Origin: Paramoeba atlantica
Lineage: Eukaryota > Protista > Discosea
Assembly (NCBI GenBank): GCA_977017575.1
Contig: CDRNVI010000147.1
Location: 1-64,000 of the forward strand
DNA length: 64,000 nt
Direction of reading: 5' to 3'
The notes below the pieces were generated by a model. It saw nothing but the letters and a program-made list of their open reading frames with translations. It was not told where the DNA came from and did no database searches. Made by a program: the position numbers and the translations under genes. This document shows positions 20,275 through 60,779 of this stretch, one piece after another. Within the stretch, counting starts at the first letter, position 1, and each line of letters opens with the position of its first letter.

Positions 20275-21070
20275 GCAGGTAGGGCATGCAATGCCAATTC
20301 CGGGGATATTTTACCGAAAGGGGATGCTCTACACCGGTTGCTTACATCCCTAAATGTAACCCTCATGAGATCCCAAGCCCGCATGCTCGTCCTACGCCGG
20401 CCTGCTGTGGGTCCTGATTCAGCGCTCCTAGGCTATGGGAACGAGTAGTGGATCACTCGCCACACCCAAAGACTTCCTCGCCTGCGAAATCTGGCCGCTA
20501 TACAACGTTTTCCCGCGGCAAACGCCGACCCGGCTCTCGTTGTGTATGACCAGGGGTATGGCCAGGTGACTTTCGTGGGAAACTCCCGGTACGGATGCTG
20601 GTCGGGTCGACAGAGTCTATGCTCACGCCTAGTCCGTCAGGGCTAGGTACCCCAAGTGAGGTAGTACACGGGTAGTGAATCTCCTCCCCGTCGGCCAGCA
20701 TCCTGTTTCGTGACCGTGTCGTTGTCGACACAGGCCCGCGCCTGCGCCCTCCCGTATAGCAAGGGAAGGGTTCACAAGTCAGGCCGTGGAGAGGTCGAAA
20801 GACCCGGTCCGGAACGCGCGAATGGATTGGGTCTGGATTGCTTGTTTTAATTTTTACTGTGTCTTATTTGTCGTATATACTTAGGGGAGATTGAATTGCT
20901 AGTTTTGGGCTGAGAAAAAAGAAAAAGAAAAAAAAAAAAAGGTGAATTGCTAGTTTTGGGCTGAGAAAAAAAAGAAAAAGAAAATATGCTTCTGTGGAAA
21001 TAAAAAGAATTGCCAATTTGATTGCTTGTTTTAAATTCATATACCCAAAAAAAAAAAAAAAAAAAAAAAA
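20275..21070 (+). ncRNA. Putative structured non-coding retroposed segment ending in A-rich tracts and poly(A) (21047-21070); identity unknown
   Basis: Multiple stems: 20320-20350, 20593-20601/20695-20703, 20628-20647, GGTC-GAAA-GACC at 20793-20804. Region 20702-21046 is homologous to 54131-54391. No credible ORF. Confidence 0.4.
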
Positions 21071-21107
21071 TCTTTAACGATAAAGATACAGTTTCTGTAC
21101 CTTGTTG
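21069..21107 (+). other. Full 39-nt spliced-leader-like sequence heading a retrotransposon ORF
   Basis: The 3' half CAGTTTCTGTACCTTGTTG differs at 2/19 from the conserved kinetoplastid SL 3' half CAGTTTCTGTACTTTATTG. Followed by a 44-nt T-rich UTR and ATG 21152. The first two A's are shared with the upstream poly(A). Confidence 0.8.
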
Positions 21108-21151
21108 AATTTTTTCTATTTCATCTCTTTCCGAGGTACGGGTTAATTTTT

Positions 21152-29469: not shown

Positions 29470-30622
29470 ATTCGAATCTCTGGTTTCACCTTTATTGCTG
29501 TATGGCTGTAGAAACTTTTCCCTAATAAAAAAAGACGCTGATTTAATTGACTGTGAAGTGAACCGAATGAGAAGACTAGCGCTCGGGGTTCGTACTTGGG
29601 ATGGTACAAGATGTACACCATGTGATGCACTATATGGGAACAGAATGCGACTTTCTAACGCATGTCGAGTCCTCCGAGTTCAAATGCTAGGACACCTGAT
29701 CCGCGGCAATAATCCCTTCAAATCGGTAATGCTACGGCGCAAAGCAACAGGAAAGAAATATCGTCCCACTCTATCAGAGGCATGTGCTGAAGACATGGAA
29801 CTAGATGTCGAAGATCTCAATGCCCTAGCGGGAGATCGGGATTGGTGGGCGTCGAGAGTTAAATTTTTGCGTGAATATCTTGAATCTCACAAATCCTACA
29901 TGGTTTTCGGCTCTAGATCCTGGAAGAAGGTATGCCAGGACTTAGATACTACCACCTACAAAGTACTCGAAGGAATTGAAGAAGGCACGGACCATTCTCC
30001 TCTCTCAGCTGATTCCGAACACATATACGTAGATGGGGCTGTCAGTTCAGAAGCAGGAAAACCAGCCGCGGGTTCGGGGATAGTTATTGTTAATTCAAAT
30101 GGTGTAAGAACCAGACAACACGTTTTACCACCGGAATGCACTTCACCGGATCGGGCTGAACTTCGCTCCTTTCTTTTAGGCATTCAGGCAGCTTCGTCTT
30201 CTACGAGGAACACAGTTATACATACTGATTCTCATTATGTATGGGACTGGTATCATAATGTTAGGGTTCGTTTTTCAATCATTGGACACGGTGGCATGCC
30301 AAATGCTGACCTACTCACGCAGATACAAGGAGCAATTAAAGAGCGTTGTACAGATAGTAGTCTCTACGTTATTAAAGTGCGGGCACAATGCGGGAATTCC
30401 TTCAATGAAAAAGCTGATGAAATAGCACGCAAAGCACAGAGAACAGCTGCACGTCGTTTTTCATGCGTCATTCACACGCAAAGGGAGGGAAACAAATCTA
30501 ATCACGGTCAAAAAAGGGAGCATGATCTCCAAGAAAAATCTCCACACAAAGTGAATAATAATAATAATAATAACAAAAGACTATACACATGCAACTTTCA
30601 ACGTACACTCTCCTTAGCGTGA
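29470..30622 (+). mobile_element. 5'-truncated RNase H-bearing LINE fragment; parent of the 748-bp array
   Basis: LYGCRNF...EVNRMRR...MLGHLIRG...LSEACAED...DRDWW, then RNase H YVDG/RAEL/HTDS/EKADE. The left boundary is approximate. Confidence 0.8.
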
Positions 30623-39600: not shown

Positions 39601-42600
39601 GATAGTAGTCTCTACGTTATTAAAGTGCGGGCACACTGCGGGAATTCCTTCAATGAAAAAGCTGATGAAATAGCACGCAAAGCACAGAGAACAGCTGCAC
39701 GTCGTTTTTCATGCGTCATTCACACGCAAAGGGAGGGAAACAAATCTAATCACGGTCAAAAAAGGGAGCATGATCTCCAAGAAAAATCTCCACACAAAGT
39801 GAATAATAATAATAATAATAACAAAAGACTATACACATGCAACTTTCAACGTACACTCTCCTTAGCGTGAATATCTTGAATCTCACAAATCCTACATGGT
39901 TTTCGGCTCTAGATCCTGGAAGAAGGTATGCCAGGACTTAGATACTACCACCTACAAAGTACTCGAAGGAATTGAAGAAGGCACGGACCATTCTCCTCTC
40001 TCAGCTGATTCCGAACACATATACGTAGATGGGGCTGTCAGTTCAGAAGCAGGAAAACCAGCCGCGGGTTCGGGGATAGTTATTGTTAATTCAAATGGTG
40101 TAAGAACCAGACAACACTTTTTACCACCGGAATGCACTTCACCGGATCGGGCTGAACTTCGCTCCTTTCTTTTAGGCATTCAGGCAGCTTCGTCTTCTAC
40201 GAGGAACACAGTTATACATACTGATTCTCATTATGTATGGGACTGGTATCATAATGTTAGGGTTCGTTTTTCAATCATTGGACACGGTGGCATGCCAAAT
40301 GCTGACCTACTCACGCAGATACAAGGAGCAATTAAAGAGCGTTGTACAGATAGTAGTCTCTACGTTATTAAAGTGCGGGCACACTGCGGGAATTCCTTCA
40401 ATGAAAAAGCTGATGAAATAGCACGCAAAGCACAGAGAACAGCTGCACGTCGTTTTTCATGCGTCATTCACACGCAAAGGGAGGGAAACAAATCTAATCA
40501 CGGTCAAAAAAGGGAGCATGATCTCCAAGAAAAATCTCCACACAAAGTGAATAATAATAATAATAATAACAAAAGACTATACACATGCAACTTTCAACGT
40601 ACACTCTCCTTAGCGTGAATATCTTGAATCTCACAAATCCTACATGGTTTTCGGCTCTAGATCCTGGAAGAAGGTATGCCAGGACTTAGATACTACCACC
40701 TACAAAGTACTCGAAGGAATTGAAGAAGGCACGGACAATTCTCCTCTCTCAGCTGATTCCGAACACATATACGTAGATGGGGCTGTCAGTTCAGAAGCAG
40801 GAAAACCAGCCGCGGGTTCGGGGATAGTTATTGTTAATTCAAATGGTGTAAGAACCAGACAACACTTTTTACCACCGGAATGCACTTCACCGGATCGGGC
40901 TGAACTTCGCTCCTTTCTTTTAGGCATTCAGGCAGCTTCGTCTTCTACGAGGAACACAGTTATACATACTGATTCTCATTATGTATGGGACTGGTATCAT
41001 AATGTTAGGGTTCGTTTTTCAATCATTGGACACGGTGGCATGCCAAATGCTGACCTACTCACGCAGATACAAGGAGCAATTAAAGAGCGTTGTACAGATA
41101 GTAGTCTCTACGTTATTAAAGTGCGGGCACACTGCGGGAATTCCTTCAATGAAAAAGCTGATGAAATAGCACGCAAAGCACAGAGAACAGCTGCACGTCG
41201 TTTTTCATGCGTCATTCACACGCAAAGGGAGGGAAACAAATCTAATCACGGTCAAAAAAGGGAGCATGATCTCCAAGAAAAATCTCCACACAAAGTGAAT
41301 AATAATAATAATAATAACAAAAGACTATACACATGCAACTTTCAACGTACACTCTCCTTAGCGTGAATATCTTGAATCTCACAAATCCTACATGGTTTTC
41401 GGCTCTAGATCCTGGAAGAAGGTATGCCAGGACTTAGATACTACCACCTACAAAGTACTCGAAGGAATTGAAGAAGGCACGGACCATTCTCCTCTCTCAG
41501 CTGATTCCGAACACATATACGTAGATGGGGCTGTCAGTTCAGAAGCAGGAAAACCAGCCGCGGGTTCGGGGATAGTTATTGTTAATTCAAATGGTGTAAG
41601 AACCAGACAACACTTTTTACCACCGGAATGCACTTCACCGGATCGGGCTGAACTTCGCTCCTTTCTTTTAGGCATTCAGGCAGCTTCGTCTTCTACGAGG
41701 AACACAGTTATACATACTGATTCTCATTATGTATGGGACTGGTATCATAATGTTAGGGTTCGTTTTTCAATCATTGGACACGGTGGCATGCCAAATGCTG
41801 ACCTACTCACGCAGATACAAGGAGCAATTAAAGAGCGTTGTACAGATAGTAGTCTCTACGTTATTAAAGTGCGGGCACACTGCGGGAATTCCTTCAATGA
41901 AAAAGCTGATGAAATAGCACGCAAAGCACAGAGAACAGCTGCACGTCGTTTTTCATGCGTCATTCACACGCAAAGGGAGGGAAACAAATCTAATCACGGT
42001 CAAAAAAGGGAGCATGATCTCCAAGAAAAATCTCCACACAAAGTGAATAATAATAATAATAATAACAAAAGACTATACACATGCAACTTTCAACGTACAC
42101 TCTCCTTAGCGTGAATATCTTGAATCTCACAAATCCTACATGGTTTTCGGCTCTAGATCCTGGAAGAAGGTATGCCAGGACTTAGATACTACCACCTACA
42201 AAGTACTCGAAGGAATTGAAGAAGGCACAGACAATTCTCCTCTCTCAGCTGATTCCGAACACATATACGTAGATGGGGCTGTCAGTTCAGAAGCAGGAAA
42301 ACCAGCCGCGGGTTCGGGGATAGTTATTGTTAATTCAAATGGTGTAAGAACCAGACAACACTTTTTACCACCGGAATGCACTTCACCGGATCGGGCTGAA
42401 CTTCGCTCCTTTCTTTTAGGCATTCAGGCAGCTTCGTCTTCTACGAGGAACACAGTTATACATACTGATTCTCATTATGTATGGGACTGGTATCATAATG
42501 TTAGGGTTCGTTTTTCAATCATTGGACACGGTGGCATGCCAAATGCTGACCTACTCACGCAGATACAAGGAGCAATTAAAGAGCGTTGTACAGATAGTAG

Positions 42601-45600
42601 TCTCTACGTTATTAAAGTGCGGGCACACTGCGGGAATTCCTTCAATGAAAAAGCTGATGAAATAGCACGCAAAGCACAGAGAACAGCTGCACGTCGTTTT
42701 TCATGCGTCATTCACACGCAAAGGGAGGGAAACAAATCTAATCACGGTCAAAAAAGGGAGCATGATCTCCAAGAAAAATCTCCACACAAAGTGAATAATA
42801 ATAATAATAATAACAAAAGACTATACACATGCAACTTTCAACGTACACTCTCCTTAGCGTGAATATCTTGAATCTCACAAATCCTACATGGTTTTCGGCT
42901 CTAGATCCTGGAAGAAGGTATGCCAGGACTTAGATACTACCACCTACAAAGTACTCGAAGGAATTGAAGAAGGCACGGACCATTCTCCTCTCTCAGCTGA
43001 TTCCGAACACATATACGTAGATGGGGCTGTCAGTTCAGAAGCAGGAAAACCAGCCGCGGGTTCGGGGATAGTTATTGTTAATTCAAATGGTGTAAGAACC
43101 AGACAACACGTTTTACCACCGGAATGCACTTCACCGGATCGGGCTGAACTTCGCTCCTTTCGTTTAGGCATTCAGGCAGCTTCGTCTTCTACGAGGAACA
43201 CAGTTATACATACTGATTCTCATTATGTATGGGACTGGTATCATAATGTTAGGGTTCGTTTTTCAATCATTGGATACGGTGGCATGCCAAATGCTGACCT
43301 ACTCACGCAGATACAAGGAGCAATTAAAGAGCGTTGTACAGATAGTAGTCTCTACGTTATTAAAGTGCGGGCACACTGCTGGAATTCCTTCAATGAAAAA
43401 GCTGATGAAATAGCACGCAAAGCACAGAGAACAGCTGCACGTCGTTTTTCATGCGTCATTCACACGCAAAGGGAGGGAAACAAATCTAATCACGGTCAAA
43501 AAAGGGAGCATGATCTCCAAGAAAAATCTCCACACAAAGTGAATAATAATAATAATAATAACAAAAGACTATACACATGCAACTTTCAACGTACACTCTC
43601 CTTAGCGTGAATATCTTGAATCTCACAAATCCTACATGGTTTTCGGCTCTAGATCCTGGAAGAAGGTATGCCAGGACTTAGATACTACCACCTACAAAGT
43701 ACTCGAAGGAATTGAAGAAGGCACGGACAATTCTCCTCTCTCAGCTGATTCCGAACACATATACGTAGATGGGGCTGTCAGTTCAGAAGCAGGAAAACCA
43801 GCCGCGGGTTCGGGGATAGTTATTGTTAATTCAAATGGTGTAAGAACCAGACAACACTTTTTACCACCGGAATGCACTTCACCGGATCGGGCTGAACTTC
43901 GCTCCTTTCTTTTAGGCATTCAGGCAGCTTCGTCTTCTACGAGGAACACAGTTATACATACTGATTCTCATTATGTATGGGACTGGTATCATAATGTTAG
44001 GGTTCGTTTTTCAATCATTGGACACGGTGGCATGCCAAATGCTGACCTACTCACGCAGATACAAGGAGCAATTAAAGAGCGTTGTACAGATAGTAGTCTC
44101 TACGTTATTAAAGTGCGGGCACACTGCGGGAATTCCTTCAATGAAAAAGCTGATGAAATAGCACGCAAAGCACAGAGAACAGCTGCACGTCGTTTTTCAT
44201 GCGTCATTCACACGCAAAGGGAGGGAAACAAATCTAATCACGGTCAAAAAAGGGAGCATGATCTCCAAGAAAAATCTCCACACAAAGTGAATAATAATAA
44301 TAATAATAACAAAAGACTATACACATGCAACTTTCAACGTACACTCTCCTTAGCGTGAATATCTTGAATCTCACAAATCCTACATGGTTTTCGGCTCTAG
44401 ATCCTGGAAGAAGGTATGCCAGGACTTAGATACTACCACCTACAAAGTACTCGAAGGAATTGAAGAAGGCACGGACCATTCTCCTCTCTCAGCTGATTCC
44501 GAACACATATACGTAGATGGGGCTGTCAGTTCAGAAGCAGGAAAACCAGCCGCGGGTTCGGGGATAGTTATTGTTAATTCAAATGGTGTAAGAACCAGAC
44601 AACACTTTTTACCACCGGAATGCACTTCACCGGATCGGGCTGAACTTCGCTCCTTTCTTTTAGGCATTCAGGCAGCTTCGTCTTCTACGAGGAACACAGT
44701 TATACATACTGATTCTCATTATGTATGGGACTGGTATCATAATGTTAGGGTTCGTTTTTCAATCATTGGACACGGTGGCATGCCAAATGCTGACCTACTC
44801 ACGCAGATACAAGGAGCAATTAAAGAGCGTTGTACAGATAGTAGTCTCTACGTTATTAAAGTGCGGGCACACTGCGGGAATTCCTTCAATGAAAAAGCTG
44901 ATGAAATAGCACGCAAAGCACAGAGAACAGCTGCACGTCGTTTTTCATGCGTCATTCACACGCAAAGGGAGGGAAACAAATCTAATCACGGTCAAAAAAG
45001 GGAGCATGATCTCCAAGAAAAATCTCCACACAAAGTGAATAATAATAATAATAATAACAAAAGACTATACACATGCAACTTTCAACGTACACTCTCCTTA
45101 GCGTGAATATCTTGAATCTCACAAATCCTACATGGTTTTCGGCTCTAGATCCTGGAAGAAGGTATGCCAGGACTTAGATACTACCACCTACAAAGTACTC
45201 GAAGGAATTGAAGAAGGCACAGACAATTCTCCTCTCTCAGCTGATTCCGAACACATATACGTAGATGGGGCTGTCAGTTCAGAAGCAGGAAAACCAGCCG
45301 CGGGTTCGGGGATAGTTATTGTTAATTCAAATGGTGTAAGAACCAGACAACACTTTTTACCACCGGAATGCACTTCACCGGATCGGGCTGAACTTCGCTC
45401 CTTTCTTTTAGGCATTCAGGCAGCTTCGTCTTCTACGAGGAACACAGTTATACATACTGATTCTCATTATGTATGGGACTGGTATCATAATGTTAGGGTT
45501 CGTTTTTCAATCATTGGACACGGTGGCATGCCAAATGCTGACCTACTCACGCAGATACAAGGAGCAATTAAAGAGCGTTGTACAGATAGTAGTCTCTACG

Positions 45601-46924
45601 TTATTAAAGTGCGGGCACACTGCGGGAATTCCTTCAATGAAAAAGCTGATGAAATAGCACGCAAAGCACAGAGAACAGCTGCACGTCGTTTTTCATGCGT
45701 CATTCACACGCAAAGGGAGGGAAACAAATCTAATCACGGTCAAAAAAGGGAGCATGATCTCCAAGAAAAATCTCCACACAAAGTGAATAATAATAATAAT
45801 AATAACAAAAGACTATACACATGCAACTTTCAACGTACACTCTCCTTAGCGTGAATATCTTGAATCTCACAAATCCTACATGGTTTTCGGCTCTAGATCC
45901 TGGAAGAAGGTATGCCAGGACTTAGATACTACCACCTACAAAGTACTCGAAGGAATTGAAGAAGGCACGGACCATTCTCCTCTCTCAGCTGATTCCGAAC
46001 ACATATACGTAGATGGGGCTGTCAGTTCAGAAGCAGGAAAACCAGCCGCGGGTTCGGGGATAGTTATTGTTAATTCAAATGGTGTAAGAACCAGACAACA
46101 CGTTTTACCACCGGAATGCACTTCACCGGATCGGGCTGAACTTCGCTCCTTTCTTTTAGGCATTCAGGCAGCTTCGTCTTCTACGAGGAACACAGTTATA
46201 CATACTGATTCTCATTATGTATGGGACTGGTATCATAATGTTAGGGTTCGTTTTTCAATCATTGGATACGGTGGCATGCCAAATGCTGACCTACTCACGC
46301 AGATACAAGGAGCAATTAAAGAGCGTTGTACAGATAGTAGTCTCTACGTTATTAAAGTGCGGGCACACTGCGGGAATTCCTTCAATAAAAAAGCTGATGA
46401 AATAGCACGCAAAGCACAGAGAACAGCTGCACGTCGTTTTTCATGCGTCATTCACACGCAAAGGGAGGGAAACAAATCTAATCACGGTCAAAAAAGGGAG
46501 CATGATCTCCAAGAAAAATCTCCACACAAAGTGAATATGTAAAAAGGGAAACTGAAAAATACAGAAGAAGGCAGCACAGTCAGGATTGCTCGTTCACTCA
46601 ACCCAGAAGCTAATACCGGGGATCCAGTAACGTTTTCTCAGTACAAGACATCACGGGGTAGACTGACGAATGCCCCCATTTTTGTGAAGAAAAGCCGCTA
46701 TATGTAATCGAAATTTGCTGTGTATAACTTTGCGCATTAATCTGGAACGCTTATTTTCAGGAGTGTTATGTCCTCTTGGTACATTTATTTATCAACGCGT
46801 TAATAATATTCTGGAGCATTTATGTATATTTCATTGCTAAATATCCGTACTCATACGAAAACACTGAGTGGGGTACGAAAACACTGAGTGGGGATAGTAT
46901 ACGGTGGTTTATTTGGCAAGCAGA
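29869..46924 (+). repeat. 748-bp tandem array, 22 copies of a LINE RNase H domain, with two longer terminal-type units (31365-32440, 45849-46924)
   Basis: Unit start GCGTGAATATC at 29869 and 30617. ORF starts step by 748 from 33164 to 45880 (18 copies), plus copies at 29900, 30648, 31396 and 32441 (partial). Confidence 0.97.
30648..31370 (+). CDS. Representative 240-aa stand-alone RNase H1-like ORF, present in most array units
   Basis: D(YVDG)-E(RAEL)-D(HTDS)-H(RAHCG)-D(KADE) intact. Whether it is expressed is unknown. Confidence 0.55.
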   Translation: MVFGSRSWKKVCQDLDTTTYKVLEGIEEGTDHSPLSADSEHIYVDGAVSSEAGKPAAGSGIVIVNSNGVRTRQHVLPPECTSPDRAELRSFLLGIQAASSSTRNTVIHTDSHYVWDWYHNVRVRFSIIGHGGMPNADLLTQIQGAIKERCTDSSLYVIKVRAHCGNSFNEKADEIARKAQRTAARRFSCVIHTQREGNKSNHGQKREHDLQEKSPHKVNNNNNNNKRLYTCNFQRTLSLA

Positions 46925-47279: not shown

Positions 47280-48444
47280 TTTTACAGCTGATAACGGTGT
47301 CAGAAATGCCCAATCACATAGTAAAATAATTTTTCATATACCATCCCAGAACTCACAAAAGGATAACGATAGCAATGACACTTGTCCCCTCGAAACCAGC
47401 AAAGCCTCAAAGTAAAAAAGAACAGTTCCCGGATCAATTATTGTATACGCGCCAATTGTTGTCAAACGTGATGAAGAATCAATGCAGAAGTAGCAGTATC
47501 TAATATATTCGAAAGGACCTAATATATTCGAAGGCAACTAATCAATACTTATTTGTACGGAGATATACGTGTGGTAGTGAACTCTTTTAGAGTCGTAAAC
47601 TCCCAATCCACTTTTCATCGGTGATGTAATCTCGGAGTTGAGACACTACCGTGTAAGCCGATAGCTTTTCAAGTTCCAGCTGAAAAGCCTCACGCACGTT
47701 TTCATATTTTCGATTCGCGCGCTGAGCCAACGCCTTTAATAGTTGTTTTGTGTCGTTGTGCAACACACCACAATCTGAGGCGGCGATGCAACGAAATGCC
47801 TCACTGTCCACACCTTTCTCTGTCACATATTTCTTGAACTTAAATATTAAAGATCTTAAATATTAAGAGATCTACATACATTCATATCCCCCCCAATAGA
47901 GAAATATTAAGAGATCTACTGAACTTCCTTTCCTGGGCTTGCTGCAGTAGGTAGTTGCTTGTTTGTTTCTTGTAATAAAAAAACAAAAATTTGTAGCTTG
48001 TAACTGTTGCAGCAAGTGTGAACCACTGTGAAATCATAGAGGACTTCTCCCATATGGGGCCACATGATAGCGAGGTCGGGGCCAGATCGAATCCTGCGCG
48101 CCTTACATGGATGTTGGTCAGAAACCTCCGCAGAAATAGAGCATTTACACTTTGTACAATAAAATGAGGAGTGAATTCGCGGTTCGATAACACACGGAAG
48201 TCCTGCCTTCGCGCACAAGTCAGCTAGATAGCGCACGATGTGAGAGTGTTTACGAGTGCAGTTCATACCTGAGCATCTCGAGCATCCTGCGATATGTGGA
48301 ATAATACTAGAAGATGTTTCTGGACCACAGCATCCCGGGCATACGACGTTTATTGGCGCTTTCGGTAGACTTATTCCAAGTCGCATCATTAGGGTGTAGC
48401 GGAAAAGGTAAGGATTCACATAGTTATTCGTACTCTCTAAATGT
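47280..48444 (-). pseudogene. 5'-truncated CRE-like element 3' end (CCHC + REL + 3' UTR), disrupted by two small insertions
   Basis: HLESTNNYVNPYLFRY...CPGCC...PHIAGC...SGPDLAIMW...LYDFTVVH, closely similar to the 50186 ORF C-terminus. Shares a 3'-UTR motif with 53968-53998. Confidence 0.88.
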
Positions 48445-49795
48445 CCGAGGCAGCGCACATGCAAATCGCCGCGATTGAAGTCGTGAAGTCACAAAACTTT
48501 GATATGCCTTTTTCTGAAAACCGAAAGCTGAGACCACGCGCAGCACGCAGCGGCGCGCCAAAGTGGATTTATGCACTCGTGAGTGCGCGCTCCGAATGTT
48601 GATGGATTTGCGTTGCGCGATTCGAGGCAGCGCACACATCGCGCAAATCGCCGCGATTGAAGTCGTGAAGTCACAAAACTTTGATATACATTTTTCTGAA
48701 AACCAAAAACTGAGACCACGCGCAGCACGCAGCGGCGCGCCAAAGTGGATTTATGCACTCGTGAGTGCGCGCTCCGAATGTTGATGGATTTGCGTTGCGT
48801 GATCCGAGGCAGCGCACATGCAAATCGCCGCGATTGAAGTCGTGAAGTCACAAAACTTTGATATGCCTTTTTCTGAAAACCGAAAGCTGAGACCACGCGC
48901 AGCACGCAGCGGCGCGCCAAAGTGGATTTATGCACTCGTGAGTGTGCGCTCCGAATGTTTATGGATTTGCGTTGCGCGATTCGAGGCAGCGCACACATCG
49001 CGCAAATCGCCGCGATTGAAGTCGTGAAGTCACAAAACTTTGATATACATTTTTCTGAAAACCAAAAACTGAGACCACGCGCAGCACGCAGCGGCGCGCC
49101 AAAGTGGATTTATGCACTCGTGAGTGCGCGCTCCGAATGTTGATGGATTTGCGTTGCGCGATCCGAGGCACCGCACACGCAAATCGCCGCGATTGAAGTT
49201 GTGAAGTCACAAAACTTTGATATGCCTTTTTCTGAAAGCCGAAAGCTGAGACCACGCGCAGGAGCAACGGTGCGCCAAAGTGGATTTATGCACTCGTGAG
49301 TGCGCATTCCGAATGTTGATGGATTTGCATTGCGTGATCCGAGGCACCGCACACGCAAATCGCCGCGATTGAAGTCGTGAAGTCACAAAACTTTGATATA
49401 CATTTTTCTGAAAACCAAAAACTGAGACCACGCGCAGCACGCAGCGGCGCGCCAAAGTGGATTTATGCACTCGTGAGTGCGCGCTCCGAATGTTGATGGA
49501 TTTGCGTTGCGCGATCCGAGGCACCGCACACGCAAATCGCCGCGATTGAAGTTGTGAAGTCACAAAACTTTGATATGCCTTTTTCTGAAAACCGAAAGCT
49601 GAGACCACGCGCAGCACGCAGCGGCGCGCCAAAGTGGATTTATGCACTCGTGAGTGTGCGCTCCGAATGTTGATGGATTTGCGTTGCGTGATCCGAGGCA
49701 CCGCACACGCAAATCGCCGCGATTGAAGGCGTGAAGTCGCAAAACTTTGATGCGCCTTTTTCTGAAAACCGAAAGCTGAGACCACGCGCAGCACT
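48445..49795. repeat. ~177-bp GC-rich satellite, ~7.5 units (182,177,182,177,176,177,177 bp)
   Basis: GCAAATCGCC anchors at 48461, 48643, 48820, 49002, 49179, 49355, 49532 and 49709. Confidence 0.95.
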
Positions 49796-49929: not shown

Positions 49930-50120
49930 TTTCAACTTGCAAAGGGCACAGTTGTAGGCAGAACTTCACGTAAGGGACAAGTTAAAATAAAGATTTCGTA
50001 CGGGCCAGAATCTGAGAGTGAAGGTCCAAGCGGTTTTCTTTACTTACCACAATCACACAAGATCAGAATCCGCAGTATTCGAGCAACAAAATTGCTGAAA
50101 GTTGAGATTCCAACTTTCTC
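49930..50120 (+). pseudogene. Fragment of the CRE-like N-terminal WGKG/GFLYLP domain
   Basis: KGTVVGRTSRKGQVKIKISYGP...GFLYLPQSHKIRIRSIRATKLLKVE aligns with 50701-50945. Confidence 0.8.
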
Positions 50121-50143
50121 AAACGCGGATGATATTGTATTGT

Positions 50144-53100
50144 ATTTCTGTACCTTGTTGTTGTTTTTTTATATATTTAATCGCTATGACACGCCTTGCT
50201 CGCGTAGATTCTCAGACGTCGAAAGGCTTAGGTGTGAAAACTGGTCGATCGAAAGTGAAATCAAGCGTACCAGAAAAGAAATACCAAAAGAACAAGGAGA
50301 AAAAGCACGTAGTCAATGACTTTTCGGGCGACAAATTTGGCGAGACCATTCCCCCCACCCCGACAAAGACGAGAATACCACGAATAAGAATCATCGGAAC
50401 AACTACTACCCCCACCCCGACAAAACCGAAGAAAACGCCACGAATCAGAATCATCGGAGGAGAGCCACTTTCAAAGATTTGGGCAGACCACGGGACTGAC
50501 CAGGCTACTCACCACCTGCGAAACGAGACCTCCGAAGAACCGACTGATAGGGGTGAAGTTGCCACTGGCGAACTACACGAATCTCATAAAAAAGATCTGC
50601 GTGACGAATGTGACGGGATGTCGTTAGACAGCGAGTGCGAAGCAGAGCGAGAGATGGCGACACGGAGCAGCAGCTCAAAGTCAGCAGACCATGTACACAA
50701 CGTTGTGTCTAAGTGGGGAAAAGGGACGGAATGTGTAATCGAATGGGGATTCCGACAGAATGCCGCAACATACACTTCAAAAGGTATCGTTGTCGGTCGA
50801 TCTGCTCGAAAAGGAAATGTGAAAATCAAGATATCCTACGAACCTGCTCCAGGGAACGAAGGCCCAAATGGTTTCCTTTATCTTCCTCAGTCCAACAAAA
50901 TCAAAATCTATAGTCTTCGAGCCACCAAACTGCTTAAAGTTGAGACGACAATAAGAAACTTGGAGGAACAGGCGGACAACATTTCTAGTGAAGATGGTCA
51001 AAGCGACCTCGAACCTCTTCCACCCATGGCGCAAATCGATCCATCCTTCTCAGTCCATGTCGTGGCTATCTTCCGCGCAATCATTCGAGGCTATTCCGCC
51101 GTGAAACTCGACTCTGAAAAAGCAGCAATATGGCATAAATTCCTGAACGCACCCCGAGATTCGCTGGCTACAGTTCGTCAAATGTCTCGACGGAAACAAA
51201 GTATAGGACACACACGCAAGACAGAGGAACTATCAACAGAATGCAATCTCAGTGCAGATGAACGCGAAGAACTGCAGGTCGACAGACGCTCGATAAGAAA
51301 CGCATTGACGACCGCCCGAGCTTCGAATCTGGGGAAAGCCACCCGCATCATTGACAACGTATATAGGGACTCTGTGCTTACAGCCGACGAAAAAGTTCAG
51401 AAATTGAAGGAGCTACATCCTGAGGGCCATGCCATTCAAATCCCGGAAACCGATTTTCCACGCATTGGCATAGTAGAGAAATCGGAACTTCGGCTAGCCG
51501 TCGACAAGTTAGCTCGGGGAGCTTCACCAGGACCAAGCGGGCTCAGCGAGAGTATGATGCGTTTACTTGGGGACGACGATGAATCAAGCCTCTCATTGTG
51601 CCACATGATTCGGGACGTTATCAACGGTGAAATTCCGCTATGTGTTCGGAAACGTCTCACTCGATGTCGAATAATTGCCCTTCCGAAGCCACAGAATGGG
51701 ATACGTCCAGTTGCCATGGGAGACACCATCCTTAAAATTTGTGGGTCTATACTACTTCAGCGACATGAATCTTCATTAAAAGCTTTCTTTGCGCCAATCC
51801 AACGAGGAGTGTTGTGTAAGAATGCCTGCGAATCAATCATTCATGAGTTGCTACAAGAATACGAAGATGGACATGCGTTGCTCGCGGTCGATTTCAGCAA
51901 CGCCTACAATACGCCACGGCGCGATACCATTGCACAGGCCCTGACGGAAAACTCCATATTCAAACCTTTCATGCGATTGTTCTATTTGGAATATGGGCTT
52001 CCGTCAGAGTTACTCTTTTTCGCGCACAACTCTCTTTTCGCAACCATTGAAAGCACATCTGGTATTCGTCAGGGCTCCGCTCTATCTTCCATGTATTTTT
52101 GCGCACTTTTACAAGCCCCACTTCGAGAAGTCGCAAGTCTATACCCTGATGTCAAAATTCGGGCATACCAAGATGACGTGACCCTGAGTTCAAAAAATGT
52201 GCAATCGCTCGAGGCAGCTTTCCTCCATTTACGCGAAATCACTGGAGAGCTCAATCTGCATGTTAAGTTTCAAAAGTGCGAATGGTTCCAGAAAGATACT
52301 CCACGAACCGATGTACCCTTGCCGCTGGAACAACTAGGTGTCAACTTCCGTACCGATGCAATAAAAATTCTTGGAGCTTACATCGGCGCAGATGAAGTTG
52401 TAGAGAATCTTCTCCTGCAGAAAATGGAAAAACACAAATGCCTCTTTCGTCGCCTTTTGCTCATGGGTCCAAGTAACCTATCTCTCGCCATTCTGCGAAG
52501 ATGCACAATCCCGCGACAAGATTACCATTTGCGAGTCCATCGACCAAATGCCACCCTCCGGCTTGCACAATCTTTTGAAACACAGGTTCATAGAGTTTTA
52601 CAAAAATGGTGCGGTGCCGACGAAAATGCACTCAAACTCGCAGCACTTCCTCAAAAACTTGGTGGATTAGGTCTGATTTCTTCCACTCTGAAGCAGAAAT
52701 TTTGTTTTGAATCTGCCCGAACATCTATCGAAGAGCAATTTAAACCCATTTACGCTCCGGTAGATATTACAGGCGGAGTCAAGGCAATAGAAAAAGCTCA
52801 GAGCCGCGGAGAACTCTCGCAAAGGCTACTCAAAAAGAAAATAAGCAATGAACATGAAAAACAACTGGCAGAACTGCAGAAAAACACTGAGATTGAACAC
52901 ATCTTGAAGCGCACGAAGGAATCCAATTTTCATCTGGAAAGCACGAGTAACTATGTCAATCCCTACCTCTTTCGCTACACACTCAAGATGCGCTTGGGCA
53001 TCAGCCTGTCAAAAACACCTGCAAAGATTACATGCCCGGGTTGCTGCAGTCAAGAATCTCCTTCCAACATTATTCCTCACGTCGCAGGCTGTTCCCGTTG

Positions 53101-54095
53101 CTCTGGGATGAATTGTACGCGGAAACATTCCCACATTGTCCGCTATCTTGCAGAATTATGCTCCAAAGCAGGCCTGCCTTCCGTCATTGAACCGCGTATT
53201 CATTCATCATACTATTGTACCAAATGCAAATGCACCATCTCCGCGGAAGTGTCAGAACAACACCCGTGTAAAGCTCGACGAATACGTTCCGGCCCAGATA
53301 TTGCCATTATGTGGCCTCACATGGGCGAGGTCCTATACGATTTCACGGTCGTCCACACTTGCTGCACGAGCTACGTCAAACAGACCAGCAACGCTCTCTT
53401 ACAACAAGCAATCGACCGAAAGATCAAGAAATATGTCACTGAAAAAGGCGTTGATAGCGATTCTTTTCGATGTTTGGCCACTACAGACTGTGGCCTTCTG
53501 CACAGCGATACAAAAGCCCTTTTGAAAGCACTCGCTCACCGTGCCCAAGCGAATTATGAAAATGTACGTCATGCTCTTCAACTTGAAATCGAGAAGATGG
53601 GGGCATATACCGTAGTATCTCAACTGCGTGAATATATTCCGAAAGAAAACTGGATAGGAGGACTTCGGTTTTAGACACCCCAGAAGCCCAACTCAAATTT
53701 TTTATTATGGATATTCATATTGTTGTTGTTGGATATTCATATTATTTTCATTAATTATTATTTTCATTAATAGATCTTGTGAAGGTAATCGAAGCGTACA
53801 CGTAAAAAAACATAAAAGTATACGGATTGAAATTCAGGAGGGATTATATTTGAATAGGGATTCTGAACACTAGGAAATAAATGATGCTAAACCTGACTGA
53901 CACATGATGATGGTGAATTATCCAAACAAGTCATGGCTAGGCTTCGTCGCGCCAGACTCGTAAAAACATTGCTATCGTTATCCTTGTACGAGTTCTGTAA
54001 GTGAGGTTTGATTATGATTTCTTTTCTATATATGATTTACTATGTGTCCGGGCATTTTTATACAGGTTTTATTTTGTGTGACGTGTGTGCGGGCA

Positions 54096-54129
<34 letters not shown>

Positions 54130-54496
54130 TCCTGTTTCGCGACCGTGTCGCTGTCGACACAGGCCCGCGCCTGCGCCCTCCCATATAACAAGGGAAGGGT
54201 CCACAAGTCAGGCCGTGGTGAGGTCGAAAGACCCGGTCCGGAACGCGCGGATGGATTGGGCGTGGATTGCTTCCTTTTTTATTATTATTGTTATCAGAAT
54301 CATAAATAACTTAAGGCAGGTTGAATTACTAGTTTTGGGCTACAACATGTGAAATTGCTAATTTGATTGCTTGTTTACAAATCATATACCCCCCCCAATG
54401 GACCTTCATGGTTCATGTATTGGGTAATATAGAGGCAATGCCGCGTTTCATACTTCTCCCCCCTTATTAATCGCAAAAAAAAAAAAAAAAAAAAAA
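50144..54496 (+). mobile_element. Complete CRE-like retrotransposon insertion: truncated SL, ORF, 3' UTR, poly(A), transduced segment, poly(A)
   Basis: TSD ATATTGTATTGT at 50132-50143 and 54496-54507; SL remnant 50145-50160; A28 at 54099-54126; A22 at 54475-54496. Confidence 0.9.
50186..53674 (+). CDS. Intact CRE-like RT + REL polyprotein (1162 aa from the ATG after the SL remnant)
   Basis: VDFSNAYN, IRQGSALSS, AYQDDV; CPGCC...HVAGC, RKHSH, IEPR, SGPDI, YDFTVVH. The ORF-track start at 50102 runs through the flank and the SL. Confidence 0.9.
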   Translation: MTRLARVDSQTSKGLGVKTGRSKVKSSVPEKKYQKNKEKKHVVNDFSGDKFGETIPPTPTKTRIPRIRIIGTTTTPTPTKPKKTPRIRIIGGEPLSKIWADHGTDQATHHLRNETSEEPTDRGEVATGELHESHKKDLRDECDGMSLDSECEAEREMATRSSSSKSADHVHNVVSKWGKGTECVIEWGFRQNAATYTSKGIVVGRSARKGNVKIKISYEPAPGNEGPNGFLYLPQSNKIKIYSLRATKLLKVETTIRNLEEQADNISSEDGQSDLEPLPPMAQIDPSFSVHVVAIFRAIIRGYSAVKLDSEKAAIWHKFLNAPRDSLATVRQMSRRKQSIGHTRKTEELSTECNLSADEREELQVDRRSIRNALTTARASNLGKATRIIDNVYRDSVLTADEKVQKLKELHPEGHAIQIPETDFPRIGIVEKSELRLAVDKLARGASPGPSGLSESMMRLLGDDDESSLSLCHMIRDVINGEIPLCVRKRLTRCRIIALPKPQNGIRPVAMGDTILKICGSILLQRHESSLKAFFAPIQRGVLCKNACESIIHELLQEYEDGHALLAVDFSNAYNTPRRDTIAQALTENSIFKPFMRLFYLEYGLPSELLFFAHNSLFATIESTSGIRQGSALSSMYFCALLQAPLREVASLYPDVKIRAYQDDVTLSSKNVQSLEAAFLHLREITGELNLHVKFQKCEWFQKDTPRTDVPLPLEQLGVNFRTDAIKILGAYIGADEVVENLLLQKMEKHKCLFRRLLLMGPSNLSLAILRRCTIPRQDYHLRVHRPNATLRLAQSFETQVHRVLQKWCGADENALKLAALPQKLGGLGLISSTLKQKFCFESARTSIEEQFKPIYAPVDITGGVKAIEKAQSRGELSQRLLKKKISNEHEKQLAELQKNTEIEHILKRTKESNFHLESTSNYVNPYLFRYTLKMRLGISLSKTPAKITCPGCCSQESPSNIIPHVAGCSRCSGMNCTRKHSHIVRYLAELCSKAGLPSVIEPRIHSSYYCTKCKCTISAEVSEQHPCKARRIRSGPDIAIMWPHMGEVLYDFTVVHTCCTSYVKQTSNALLQQAIDRKIKKYVTEKGVDSDSFRCLATTDCGLLHSDTKALLKALAHRAQANYENVRHALQLEIEKMGAYTVVSQLREYIPKENWIGGLRF

Positions 54497-54543
54497 TATT
54501 GTATTGTTTGCTGCAACGAAACCTGAATTAAAAATCATGCTTA

Positions 54544-57151
54544 CTGTACCTTGTTGATTCATTTTAATTTTCTATTTTTCTACGCTTATGACACGCCTTT
54601 CTCGTACGTCTTCTCGTTTAGATTCCGAAAACACGCGGAAAAAGGGCAGCAGAACAACAGTGAACAACGGGAAGTCTCACGGGAGAGTTGAAAAACAACG
54701 TACTCAACGAGATCAAAGCAAGACGAACGGAATAAAGGTAGCAGAAGAATCAGGATCGCACACGGAGACACCAGTGAAGGTGAAGAAGACTCCAAAGATC
54801 AAGATAATAGGTTCCAAAACACTAGCCCCGAATTGGGCGGACCATGAGCCTCCGTGTGAAATCACATCGCGGAATCTAATCAAAATCAAAGCCAAGAACT
54901 TCCGCATCGGATCTACGAGTCAATCACACGAGAACATAGCCCATGACGAAAACCATATCCAAGAGGACCCAGCCAAAGAAATGTCCGAAACAGAAAGCGA
55001 GACCAGTGATACAATGTGTCTGGACGACGATGGATCGACGCAAGATCGAGTACAGGAGCTAATGACACAGGCCGGCAACAAATCGCCCGACCAAGTGTAC
55101 AACATCGTTTCCAAGTGGGGCAAGGGTACAGAATGTGTGATCGAATGGGGCTTCCGACAGAACACTACAAACTACAAGTCAAACGGCATCGTTGTAGGCA
55201 GGACCGTGCGAAAATCAACCGTGAAAGTCAAGATTTCATACGAGCCGGCTCTAGGTCACGATGGTCCATGCGGTTTTCTTTATCTTCCACCGTCCAATAA
55301 AATCAGAATCTGTAACCTCCAAGCCACTAAGTTATTCAAAATCGAGATGCCGACACAAAATTTGGAGGAACAAGCGGAGCACATCTCATGCGAAGACGGT
55401 CAGAGTGACCTTGATCCGCTCCCGCCTATGGCTCAAATAGGCCCATCTTTCGCGGTTCATGTTGTGGCGATTTTCCGTGCGATAATTCGGGGATATGCAG
55501 CGGCGGAGCTTGACTCAGAAAAAGAGGCGATATGGCACAAATTTTTGAATGCGCCTCGCGATTCACTTGCGACAGTACGTCAAGCAATTCGACGAAACCA
55601 AAAAGTAGCTCATGTTCGCAACGACCGAGAAAACTTGGAAGCTAGCAACTTGAGTGCGGAACAACGGGCGGAGTTAGAAATTGACAGGCGTTCGATCAGG
55701 CACGCCCTACAGACGGCGCGGGCAGGAAACCTTGGCAAAGCAACTCGGATCCTGGACAATGTCTACAAGGAATCAGCTCTCACTCCTGAAGAAAAAGTGC
55801 GAAAGCTTCAACAACTTCATCCTGAAGGCGACGCCATACGAATCCCGGAAGCAGACTTCCCACGGACTGGCGTTGTTGAGAAATCAGAGGTTCGCCTAGC
55901 GACCGAAAAATTATCCAGAGGCGCTTCACCAGGACCAACCGGCCTGAGTGAAAGCATGATGCGACTGCTCGTAGACGACGAAGAGTCATGTCTTTCACTT
56001 TGCCACATGCTTCGGGATGTCATCAACGGCGAAGTTCCTCTGAATGTGCGAAAACGTCTAACCCGATGCAGAATCATCGCGCTAGCGAAACCTCAAAATG
56101 GAATTCGACCTATTGCGATGGGGGATACCATTCTGAAGATTTGCGGTTCCATCCTTCTACAACGACATGAAAACGCTCTGCAAAATTTTTTCTCCCCAAT
56201 TCAACGAGGCATTTTGCAAAAAAACGCATGTGAGTCCATCGTTCACGAACTTTTAAATGAATACGAAGAAGGACATGCTCTCCTCACCGTCGATTTTAGC
56301 AACGCGTATAATACACCACAACGCAACGCCATTGCTGAGGCACTCCTTGGTAATCCCATTTTCAAGCCTTTCATGCGCCTATTCTACCTAGAATATGGGA
56401 TTCCCTCTGAGCTGCTATTTTTTGCGCACAATGCTCTGTTTGCTACCATCGAAAGCTCTTCAGGAATTCGCCAAGGATCGGAACTTTCATCAATGTACTT
56501 CTGCGCACTTTTGCAAGGCCCGCTACGAGAACTCATGCACCTCTATCCTGACGTGAAGATCCGAGCATACCAAGACGATGTGACTTTGAGCTCCAAAAAC
56601 GTGCAAGCATTGGAGGCAGCTTTCTTTTACCTGCGTGAGATCGCCGCAGAGATGAACCTCCGAATTAATTTCCAGAAATGCGATTGGTTTCAGAAGAACA
56701 TTCCCAACATAGCTCAGCCTCCTCCGTTGGAAAAACTTGGAGTAAACTTTTGCAGTGATGCGATAAAAGTCTTAGGCGCATACGTAGGTACAGACCAAGT
56801 CGTGGAAAATCTGCTGATCAAGAAAATGGAGAAACACAAGTGCCTATTCCGCAGGTTGTTGCTTATGGGTCCCAGTAATTTGTCTCTTGCCATTCTCCGC
56901 CGTTGTACGATTCCACGGCACGATTACCATCTACGAGTACATCGGCCAGGCGCTACTTTCCAACTAGCACAATCCTTCGAGAACCAAGTAAACAAAGTTC
57001 TAGAAAAGTGGAGTGGAGCAGACGCAAACGCCCTGAAACTCGCCGCTCTACCACAGAAACTCGGTGGCCTAGGCTTAATTTCCTCGACTCTGAAGCAGAA
57101 ACATTTCTTCGAAACTGCCAGCAAATCTATATCGGAAGACGGTCAGAGGAG
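54544..57151 (+). mobile_element. SL-headed CRE-like element, 3'-truncated after RT (no REL); ATG at 54588
   Basis: SL remnant CTGTACCTTGTTG at 54544-54556. RT motifs RQGSELSS and AYQDDV. Homology stops at KHFFETASK, where the next SL remnant begins. Confidence 0.87.
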
Positions 57152-60100
57152 GTTTCTGTACCTTGTTGCCTTGTTGAATTTTTACTACTTTGCTTTTCTT
57201 TCTTTTATGTCAGAACCTCCCCCGAGGGCGGCGCAAGGCACGCCGTCGCATCAGCAGCAGAACACTGCAGCAGTGAGGTCCACTGGCGTAAAGGAGCACA
57301 ACTTGAACTTTACGGAACAAGCGAATAGACACGAGATTGGATCATGGGACCAGTTTGAGGCAAACAAGAAACTCATCCAAGACGCTAGCACGTACGACGA
57401 CCTCATGTACACAACCCCCATTCCACAGCATATTCCCCTCAACTGGCAAAAGAAGATGGAACACAAAGCGCAAAGCATCGAGAAAAACCCAACGTCAGAC
57501 CACGGCCGCCACAACACGAAAGACGAGGAAACCGCTTTTGCCAGTGTTCGGAGAAATGAAATTCTACGAAGAAGTCAAACTGGAGAGTCATCCTTGAAAA
57601 TTAAGATCAGAAAAGAGACACGACTGAAGAAAACTCCGAAAAAGGTAAAAGTGATACTCCGTAGCTCTGATCTAACGAAGGCGAACCTCGGACAAGCGGA
57701 CATGTCACATGACGAAGGATCGGAGAGCTCATCTGCATCAGGATCAGACATCTCGGAGGACGATCGGGTGGCCGAGGTCGCCGAAGAAACAATGAAAGCT
57801 CCGGACCAAATACTAAAGATAATCAACGACTGGGGAAAAGGAACTACTTGCGAGCTACATTGGAAATTCCGCCACAGCAGTGAGATTTATCAGTCGATTG
57901 GAGAAGTTGTTACGCGACATTCTAGAAAAGGTGCAATCAGGGTAAAGATTTCCTACACACCGCAGCATCAGCCAGGTCCATCAGGATTTCTATATCTACC
58001 TGCATCTCACAAGATTAACATCTTCCGATTACGGGTGGTAAAGCTCAACCGTATTGTGACACAAACGCCATTTTTGGATATCGAAGAAACACAAGATTGT
58101 GACACGGGATGCGACTTGGAGCCTCTTCCCCCACTCGCCCACATCGACCCCACGTTTGCCGCTCACGTCATAGCAATCTTTAGATCAATCCTGCGAGGAT
58201 ATCCCACGCTCAAGCTTATAACAGAGAAAACATCCGTCTGGCACAAGTTTCTAAACGCACCCCGCGACTCACTCACCACTGTGCGACAAGCGATCCAGCG
58301 GAAGTATCATGTGCCAAACAAATTGCGCAACGAGGAGCCGGCGTTCTCCTCACCTGACGAGAAACTTGAACGTGAAGTCGACCGCCGATCAATCCGCAGT
58401 GCGCTTCGAACGGCTAGGGCTGGTAACCTAAGCAAAGCTACGCGTATCCTCGACAACGTATATTTTGACTCGAACCTTAGCGTTGAGGAGAAAGTAGCGG
58501 AGCTCAAGAGTCTACATCCCGATGGAGAGCGCCCACAAGCTCAGACGGACGCAGACCCCCGAACAGGAATCATCGAAAAACACGAACTTCGGGCCGCGAT
58601 AGAGAAACTGGCTCCGGGAGCTTCCCCGGGCCCTACGGGATTGAGTGAAGCCATGTTGCGCCTACTTGCGGATGACGAGGAATCCAGCACCGCGCTCTGC
58701 CATATGTTACGCGATGTAGTGAACGGGGAGATCGCATCGTCGGTGCGTGACAGACTGACACGATGTCGACTAATGGCCATCAACAAACCGCAGAACGGAA
58801 TACGACCGATTGCAATTGGGGAGACTCTATTGAAAGTATGTGGCTCGATCCTTCTAAACAGGAACGAAGAGAAACTGAAGAAATTTTTCCAGCCTGTCCA
58901 AAGAGGGATCCTCCAAAAGAATGCGTGCGAGGGAATTGTTCACGAGGTGCTCGATGAATATGACAAGGGACACGCCATCTTGGCGATCGATTATAAGAAT
59001 GCCTACAATACCCCCACGCGTCAAGCAATCTTCGAAGCACTCAAGAAAGACGGCATCTTCAAACCTTTCATGCGGATTTTTAATCTTGAGTACGGGGACT
59101 CGTCTGATCTGCTCTTCTTTGCCAATAACTCGCTCCATTCGATCGTGAAGAGCACTTCTGGCGTTCGACAGGGCTCAGCGCTTTCGTCACTATACTTCTG
59201 TGCCCTGATACAGGATTCGCTCAAAGAAATCGAAGAGTCCTTTCCAGATGTAACGGTTCGAGCGTACATGGACGACATAACCTTGTCATCAACAAATCCC
59301 CTATCCTTGCAGACCGCCTTTCTACACCTGCACGAATCTTCACGACTTCTGGGACTGGAAATGAACTTCCAGAAATGCGAATGGTTCAAGAAAACAGACA
59401 CTCCATGGACGCCCCAAACTCTGCAAGCGATGGGGGTAGCCTGCCCGCAAGAAACAGTGAAAATTCTAGGTGCATATATCGGACAGGACGAGATGGTAAG
59501 TGAATGCCTAAAGAAAAAGATGGACAAACACAAGTGTCTCTTTCGCCGTCTTCGACTCATGGGACCGAGCAACCTATCCCTCGCAATTCTGAATCGGTGC
59601 GCCATCCCCCGTCAAGACTATCACCTCCGAGTACACAAGCCCGAAGCATCCCTTGAAATCGCCCAGCAGTTCGACGCGGAAGTAGGCAGTATTATTCAGC
59701 ATTGGTTTAATGCAACGGGCCCTACTGCAAAACTCGCCACACTTCCGCAATATCTCGGCGGACTCGGACTTACTCCGTCATGTTTGAAGCAAAAGCACTT
59801 TTTCCAAGCGTCTCGCAAAGCCATTGAAGAGCAATCCAAAACCAATAACGCTCCGGTGGTCATAGCGGGATCCAAGCGAAACAGGGCTCTGAACGAACGT
59901 GACAGCCAGAAGAATGATACTTCCAAGCGATTAGTCATGAAAGCAATACGATCTGAACAAAAACGATTTGCAACCGAGCTGAGAAAGGACATGCGCCTCA
60001 AAGAACTAATGGAGCGAGGATCCGCAACATTTCACCACCTGCAATCAACCAGCAACTACATCAATCCGTACCTCTTCCGTTTCTGTATAATGATGCGCCT

Positions 60101-60779
60101 GGGAATAGTGCCAGAAAATATGCCTAAGAGTGTGGTATGCCCGGGATGCCTGACAGAATATTCTTCTGATACCATCTTCCAGCACATTCCTGGATGTACA
60201 CAATGCTGTGGGATAAATGCAACGAAGAAGCACACACGATTAGTCCGTTTCCTAGGTGAATTGTGTGCCAAAGCAGGGGTGCCCCATGTTATAGAACCTC
60301 GAGTACATTCATCATTCTTCTGCACCAAATGTAAGGCCACCATATCCGAAGAGCTCTCTGAACATCACCCATGCAGAGCAAGACGTATGCGATCAGGCCC
60401 TGATCTCGGTATCATGTGGTCCCATCTCGGAGAAATTCTCTACGATGTCACCGTAGTTCACAGTTGTGCCCCGAGCTATGCCAAAACCTCCGTCGAGCAG
60501 TTAATCCAAAATGCCCTTGAGCGCAAGCACAAAAAATACGTTGTACAAGGGGGCATACCGAAAGAAAGTTTCAGCTGCTTGGCAATGACCGAATTAGGAC
60601 AGTTGCACAACAACACGAAAACTCTCATTGTCTCGCTCGCACAACGGTCACAACAAAACGTGAAGGATGTCAAAGAAGCGTTCCAACTTGAAATAGAGAA
60701 GATGAACGCGTACACAATTGCCACGCAACTCCGACAATACTTTCCACCGATTCAGTGGCTCGGAGGACTTGAACACTAA
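57152..60779 (+). mobile_element. SL-headed CRE-like element with intact ORF 57207-60779 (RT + CCHC + REL)
   Basis: SL remnant 57152-57168 plus extra CCTTGTTG. IDYKNAYN, VRQGSALSS, AYMDDI; CPGC...HIPGC, SGPDL, YDVTVVH. The 3' end and TSD were not found. Confidence 0.88.

Follow-up and report, generated by a model that had tools for sequence, protein, structure and literature searches.

We analyzed a 64-kb window (positions 1 to 64,000 of contig CDRNVI010000147.1, assembly GCA_977017575.1) in which a long interspersed nuclear element (LINE), followed by 348 bp of extra DNA, lies between the two copies of a 12-bp target-site duplication (TSD). All features of this locus are on the plus strand. 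The target DNA is the remnant of an older CRE-like LINE open reading frame (ORF), from its N-terminal domain (49935-50131), as judged from a 71% DNA match to 50774-50945 and from protein alignment to both neighboring ORFs. It leads into the left TSD copy, ATATTGTATTGT (50132-50143), which is followed by an extra A (50144) and by TTTCTGTACCTTGTTG, the last 16 nucleotides (nt) of a spliced leader (SL; stub at 50145-50160, 50144-50160 with the A). Next come a T-rich 5′ untranslated region (UTR) of 25 nt (50161-50185), an intact ORF of 1162 amino acids (aa) with an N-terminal domain, a reverse transcriptase (RT) and C-terminal CCHC and restriction-like endonuclease (RLE) motifs (50186-53674), a 3′UTR of 424 nt (53675-54098), and a first poly(A) tract, A28, which is the tail of the LINE transcript (54099-54126). 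The extra DNA (54127-54474) consists of a GC-rich conserved core of ~146 nt and an AT-rich tail, and corresponds to the last 348 nt of the 3′UTR of another LINE family, which we call Z. The segment is closed by a second poly(A) tract (54475-54495; A22, 54475-54496, when the first A of the adjoining TSD copy is counted) and by the right TSD copy (54496-54507), after which the remaining target remnant (54508-54540) is ended by the next LINE at 54541.

The TSD and the two poly(A) tracts had been proposed in an earlier, sequence-only reading of this DNA, and both held up. A pattern search found ATATTGTATTGT exactly twice in the window, at the two positions given above, and nowhere on the minus strand; the chance of a 12-bp match at a fixed pair of junctions, with a few bases of slack, is about 1e-6. 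The A28 and A22 tracts enclose exactly 348 bp. Cutting out 50144-54507 restored ...GCGGATGATATTGTATTGTTTGCTGCAACG..., whose translation, ADDIVLFAATKPELKIML, continues the frame of the upstream flank, as that reading had predicted. The TSD directly flanks the insert, the insert encodes an RT, and A22 abuts the right TSD copy, all of which are features of non-LTR (non-long-terminal-repeat) elements inserted by target-primed reverse transcription. The insertion is a recent, intact LINE copy within a clean 12-bp TSD.

The same reading had taken the target for an RT remnant and not an SL gene, on the strength of the restored peptide ADDIVLF. The target is indeed an old LINE fragment and no SL gene, but the motif label was wrong, and we rejected it. 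The left flank (49935-50107) aligned to residues 197-256 of a LINE ORF of this kind, within its N-terminal domain, and the homologous stretch in two neighboring ORFs continues ...NLEEQA(D/E)(N/H)IS..., while the RT box of these ORFs is YQDDVTL at residue 661. We detected no ADDIVL-type box in any frame of 104 kb (the window and loci L001-L007). Our full sample comprised the window and eleven loci (L001-L011) of assembly ENA ERZ24900291, 256 kb in all, to which the counts below refer. No SL exon followed by an intron was present in these 256 kb, and, unlike those of the CRE clade, the element was not inserted site-specifically into an SL RNA gene, its target being the N-terminal region of an older LINE. 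A paralogous uninterrupted site was likewise not found in the 256 kb, the homology of other copies ending about 30 nt before the junction.

On either side of the locus lies further repetitive DNA. A 177/359-bp tandem repeat (48444-49794) is situated immediately upstream of the target remnant, and the downstream LINE at 54541 begins with the same 16-nt SL stub, with one mismatch. The 2063-aa ORF read at 54588-60779 is not one gene: Pfam found two RT stretches in it, and the CRE-like LINE beginning at 54541 is interrupted at about 57152, where a second stub-headed LINE, starting at 57153, happens to be in frame.

The LINE and its spliced leader

The 1162-aa ORF contains an RVT_1 domain at residues 500-722 (Pfam, E=8.6e-17), and its C-terminal CPGC..H..C, KH..VR, EPR and PD..(12)..D.T.VH motifs were invariant in six family members. 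This C-terminal region had no sequence match in Pfam, NCBIfam or the PDB, and a PDB sequence search with the single LINE protein also returned none; with a profile of eight family proteins, the best solved-structure matches were R2 proteins (E about 5e-7), in the RT region only. The arrangement of an RT followed by a C-terminal CCHC/PD..D block is that of a putative RLE LINE, an assignment that rests on these motifs.

Sister copies were present at L001 and L002 (98.8% and 99.65% identical to the window copy, respectively), with a partial one at L003. At such identities the family is therefore young, and the window copy looks intact. L001 and L002 are situated in unrelated flanks, that of L002 possibly including a TSD of TGGGGGG. 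Their 3′ ends are variable: both share the first ~200 nt of the 3′UTR with the window copy, but the poly(A) of L001 was added about 200 nt earlier than in that copy, and the end of L002 has no A's. In two public sequencing runs (X1 and X2), the distal ~200 nt of the 3′UTR (53895-54058) had about one quarter of the k-mer depth of the LINE body. The expectation of loosely positioned 3′ ends, put forward in the sequence-only reading, was thus a reasonable one in view of the differing ends of L001 and L002, but the 348-bp segment is not an instance of it.

At the 5′ end, TTTCTGTACCTTGTTG represents the last part of a 39-nt leader, AATCTTTAACGATAAAGATACAGTTTCTGTACCTTGTTG, in which it follows ...ACAG. 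The full unit was present elsewhere in the window and at sister loci, joined directly to differing 5′UTRs of differing element families. Both its 23+16 layout and its ACAGTTTCTGTAC core are those of euglenozoan leaders in the literature, whose architecture is ...ACAG|TTTCTGTAC... (PMC3795323). With up to two mismatches allowed, the 16-mer occurred 7 times in the window, against 0.12 occurrences expected. At L001, the full leader stands at the exact 5′UTR junction where the window copy and L002 keep the last 16 nt, and so both forms exist within one family.

The junction between the stub and the 5′UTR lies inside the TSD, as in retrocopies that carry a relict spliced leader, which means that the stub arrived with the complementary DNA (cDNA). 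Because the insert carries an SL fragment and the target is not an SL gene, the insertion points to an RNA intermediate that carried a spliced leader. This supports the view that the LINE was probably copied from a trans-spliced, processed messenger RNA (mRNA), and an insertion running from SL to poly(A) through an mRNA intermediate, as first suggested from the letters alone, is borne out by the position of the SL piece and of both A-tracts within the TSD.

The leaders at 5′ ends across the sample fell into two classes, namely 9 independent full leaders and 17 independent 16-nt stubs that start right after ACAG, and no leader of intermediate length was found in the 256 kb. This split is not random 5′ truncation. 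Leader-headed elements were located in the window at 50145, 54541, 57153 and 61875 (minus strand), and also at L002 and L004-L011. One of these loci, L005 (ctg3698c, 18,985 bp), contains three identical stub-headed LINE copies with a period of 5,371 bp; the name of this contig ends in "c", which may mean that it was assembled as a circle.

Two other leader arrangements were observed. Short reiterations of the last 8-10 nt of the leader (TACCTTGTTG / CCTTGTTG) were seen between the 16-nt stub and the 5′UTR at window 57153-57176, L004:18978 (minus), L007:11989, L009:20777-20830 and L010:19590 (minus), and these resemble what stuttering or realignment would leave as the copy is made. A short coding sequence headed by a full leader with a single change (TGCACC) is present, with the same upstream flank, in four places (window 12387 and 16556, L004:19768 and L009:12808, all on the minus strand), two of which are insertions in an 18-bp satellite. 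This resembles a repeated unit with a leader-headed retrocopy inside it.

Identity of the 348-bp segment

In a BLAST comparison within the window, the 348 bp aligned to 20698-21046, the 86% copy being made up of 20698-20911 plus 21008-21046. This reference copy is part of a 5′-truncated Z LINE inserted in the 18-bp satellite (20275-21072, plus strand), which comprises the last 57 codons of the Z ORF (encoded by its first 170 nt), the 3′UTR and a tail, A24, at another position than the second poly(A) of the 348-bp segment. An intact Z ORF of 1338 aa, 23% identical to the window LINE ORF, was found at L010:3219-7235. Z elements begin with a spliced leader and encode an LsmAD-like region, zinc-finger-like cysteines, an RT and a CCHC/PD..D block. 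The core of the segment was present in 8 copies, plus one tail-end fragment, and four of the core copies have a conserved ~105 nt upstream, before which a long ORF ends. Matching copies of the segment were seen at L006:2218 (minus), where it is attached to a Z body (100% identical over 204 nt), and L004:7245 (99.7%). Poly(A) was added at no fewer than four positions in the Z tail (at least four), as expected of imprecise polyadenylation.

We also compared summed k-mer depths between the LINE body and 54059-54386 in public runs. These were about 220-300 for the body and 20,000-26,000 for 54059-54386 in run X1, about 11 and 680-840 in run X2, and about 50-250 and 17,500-19,600 in run X3, so that the depth of the segment was 60-120 times that of the LINE body in the three runs, a depth ratio that is not a copy number. 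The segment was not on the sister copies L001, L002 or L003. As judged from its sequence, it is the 3′-terminal 348 nt of the 3′UTR of Z, a second and much more abundant RLE LINE family.

Other origins were considered for the 348 bp. With gathering and E-value thresholds, Rfam searches of the window, of 53600-54700 and of 20200-21150 gave no family for the segment or for its longer copy, and an origin from a transfer RNA (tRNA), 7SL, ribosomal RNA (rRNA) or a hepatitis delta virus (HDV)-like ribozyme is unsupported by them. No tRNAs were found, the 348 bp showed no protein coding, and a metagenome scan with a 25-mer from the core gave no match. The single-strand fold of the core was not distinctive (z = -1.2).

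The sequence-only reading had interpreted the segment as a 3′ transduction, in which unique, non-element DNA downstream of a source copy is carried along by the element. The layout is that of the textbook, with an element, an A-tract, extra DNA, a second A-tract and one TSD around the whole. The extra DNA, however, is a repeat, with the copies and k-mer depth given above and the native 3′ end of Z, and not non-element flank of the source. A classic transduction of unique DNA is therefore extremely improbable here. The possibility, raised in the same reading, that the segment is a constitutive 3′ end turned out to be true of another family, Z, while the sisters of the window LINE are without it.

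Composite chains and the joint between the two parts

All five Z fragments that consist of the tail only, among the 256 kb, are situated directly behind the poly(A) of another LINE and in the same orientation. Besides the window segment at 54127, which stands behind A28, these are the fragments at L004:2029 (behind A12, 20 nt and A23), at L004:7245 (behind A28 of a Z-like LINE), at L011:2475 (behind A21 of a CRE-like LINE that is 38% identical) and at L011:~11085, where a LINE is followed by A13, a 95-nt piece that we call W, A23, 115 nt of Z tail and A21. Runs of at least 12 A's or T's number only 62 in the 256 kb, and the association of tail-only Z fragments with poly(A) tails is therefore not due to chance. 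Three of the five begin at the same nucleotide, GC(T/A)TCCTG. Since the same Z variant occurs with other partners, and since the sister LINEs are without it, the segment is thus the product of a retroelement of its own, joined to the LINE tail. A 7-bp duplication, CAGCCTT, that seemed to surround the chain at L011 was rejected, as its upstream flank does not run on into the Z ORF downstream.

We tentatively favor the explanation that the insertion is a two-part retrocopy, joined by an RT template switch in one event, and consider it only a little short of an even call. The first part would be a full-length cDNA, its template the trans-spliced and polyadenylated mRNA of an RLE LINE that is CRE/R2-like and not site-specific, and the second the cDNA of the last 348 nt of the Z 3′UTR with its own poly(A) tail. 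In a single round of target-primed reverse transcription, the RT would start on a polyadenylated Z-tail RNA and proceed to the 5′ end of this RNA, or to a strong stop at the base of the conserved core. It would then switch to the poly(A) 3′ end of the LINE mRNA and copy this RNA until it reached leader position 24. The window locus has the form of such a chimera, with two RNAs in the same orientation joined 5′ end to 3′ end within one TSD, and the same kind of joint was found at four other places. R2 RT reportedly makes end-to-end template jumps in vitro, as Bibillo and Eickbush are said to have described in 2002 and 2004. It is the joining by template switching, rather than through two separate events, that we infer.

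Under the alternative of two events, the LINE would have been inserted first, with its 12-bp TSD, and a 5′-truncated or processed Z-tail RNA would later have entered its poly(A), the T-run of the opposite strand pairing with the incoming poly(A) and the second duplication consisting of A's only. Existing A-tails are known hot spots of LINE and SINE (short interspersed nuclear element) insertion in other genomes, and it is Z elements, both full-length and tail-only, that stand behind poly(A), which could reflect a target preference of Z. A possible A(n)GG duplication around a unit of LINE plus Z tail (L004:2410/7592, that is, L004:2410-7592) also fits. We nevertheless consider this course of events unlikely. 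The primary duplications of the CRE-like LINEs are not A-rich (ATATTGTATTGT in the window, possibly TGGGGGG at L002), and the chains include very short pieces, such as 20 nt plus A23, each of which would require a separate endonuclease event.

Two further joints bear on the choice between one event and two. The last 69 nt of the window LINE 3′UTR recur with 100% identity at L011:8672-8740, ending at the same base, where they are fused without A's to an internally truncated LINE of another subfamily. This joint looks like a template switch, and since it has no A's it did not arise by insertion into an A-tract. Moreover, full-leader copies stood directly behind poly(A) in 3 of 9 cases (4 of 9 when one with 8 nt in between is counted) and stubs in 0 of 17 (p about 0.03 and 0.008, respectively, by Fisher's test), a difference that a target preference does not predict, whereas an excess of poly(A)-to-full-leader joints is expected if jumps follow completion of a template. 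Joints of this kind were observed at 21075 in the window, where the A24 of 20275-21072 is followed without a spacer by a full-leader, Z-like LINE (unit 20275-26343), and also at L004:2410 and L006:6382 (minus).

The composite might instead have been inherited. Its source would already have been LINE-A28-Z-tail, and a read-through RNA, polyadenylated in the Z tail, would have been copied whole, which would amount to 3′ transduction of a neighboring repeat and not of a unique flank. Composites do seem to undergo read-through in this genome. A LINE 3′UTR followed by A12/13 and W (95 nt) is present at two loci (L010:2489-3141 and L011:10435-11088), 98.9% identical and with differing 5′ ends; the internal A-tract is of nearly equal length in both, and the second poly(A) sites differ (...AAATTATGATT|A16 vs. 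...AAATT|A23), as read-through predicts. These composites belong to a sister family, and their parts at L010:3007-3144 and L011:10953-11085 are the best candidates in the sample for inheritance by read-through. The 3′ ends of the window LINE's sisters also differ from one another. For the window insertion itself, however, such an origin is quite improbable. No second joint of ...GCGGGCAGGT, an A-run and GCTTCCTGTTTCG with the window LINE was found in the sample, L001-L003 being without it, and the same Z variant (99.7-100%) stands behind another LINE in one place (L004:7245) and is attached to a Z body in another (L006:2218). As this variant has different partners, the joint must have formed repeatedly.

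Several observations weigh against a template switch, or against parts of the picture in which it is placed. One event and two are not distinguishable at a single locus, as a later insertion of a Z tail into the LINE A-tail would leave an A-only duplication and the same picture, and the possible A(n)GG duplication would fit an insertion at the end of an existing tail. No joint of an empty or tail-less allele was reported in the public runs, whose contigs break at A-tracts. An RNA run (X5) had zero depth on the element. Finally, the AlphaFold2 model of the C-terminal domain was poor (predicted local distance difference test score, pLDDT, 44.5), leaving the RLE call to the motifs.

In more general terms, the RTs of RLE LINEs in this euglenozoan may routinely chain cDNAs in vivo by jumping to the next poly(A) end, which we regard as possible but lean against. 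If it were so, the genome would keep a natural record of R2-type jumping, in the form of chains of LINE-A(n)-fragment-A(n)-fragment within single TSDs. Starts would then occur preferentially on the Z 3′UTR module, which would in effect be a SINE-like rider, and the split between 39-nt and 16-nt leaders would mark a defined RNA 5′ end or an RT stop inside the SL.

The remainder of the window includes two large tandem arrays. The 18-bp satellite, AGTGGTCTTAATACAAAA, makes up about 1100 units with a few insertions at 1-20274. At 29870-46542 there are about 22 tandem units of 748 bp, each with a 240-aa RNase H-like ORF, one unit of which matched RNase_H in Pfam with E=2e-16.

Relation to known retroelements

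LINEs of the CRE type are known as specialists of SL genes, and here a putative relative inserts elsewhere and has the leader on its own 5′ end. As in the CRE clade (CRE1/CRE2, SLACS, CZAR), there is one long ORF with an RT followed by the CCHC and PD..D motifs of a putative RLE, the host is euglenozoan and the element is linked to the spliced leader. Unlike members of that clade, which insert into SL RNA genes, the window LINE has a LINE remnant as its target, with a 12-bp TSD, and its SL is joined to the 5′UTR in the manner of a trans-splice product. The Diplonema genome paper describes SLACS-like RTs and thousands of scattered rRNA pieces and does not mention the present arrangement, and our literature search turned up no description of LINE copies headed by a leader in Euglenozoa.

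Relict spliced leaders have been described for dinoflagellate retrogenes. There, as here, an SL at the 5′ end of a genomic copy indicates a retroposed processed mRNA, and the stub starts after an internal AG. The carrier in our case differs in being an autonomous euglenozoan LINE, without stacked leaders at the locus and with leaders that are either complete, at 39 nt, or exactly 16 nt long. The window locus is among the few where a TSD proves the inserted DNA to include the leader fragment and both tails.

The 3′ end resembles an L1 3′ transduction in its sequence of element, internal A-tract, extra sequence and second poly(A) within one TSD. What L1 carries along is unique DNA that lies downstream of the source, whereas the extra sequence here is another LINE family's 3′ end and recurs behind several different elements. 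With the supposed transduction replaced by the tail of a second family, double-tailed copies become a gauge of how often retroelement RNAs are joined or stacked, and not of how often flanking genes are carried along. A closer likeness is to L1-U6 and L1 template-switch chimeras and to Alu copies in older A-tails, which also combine two RNAs of the same orientation through a poly(A) joint within one TSD. They differ from the window insertion in that its downstream partner is a LINE 3′UTR module with a recurrent 5′ end, and its upstream partner carries an SL.

As for R2, its proteins gave the best solved-structure profile matches to our LINE, and the joints between poly(A) and the next cDNA resemble the jumps made by R2 RT in vitro. 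In contrast to the window LINE, R2 is specific to 28S ribosomal DNA, has no SL and usually has no long poly(A), and the jumping proposed here would have taken place in vivo.

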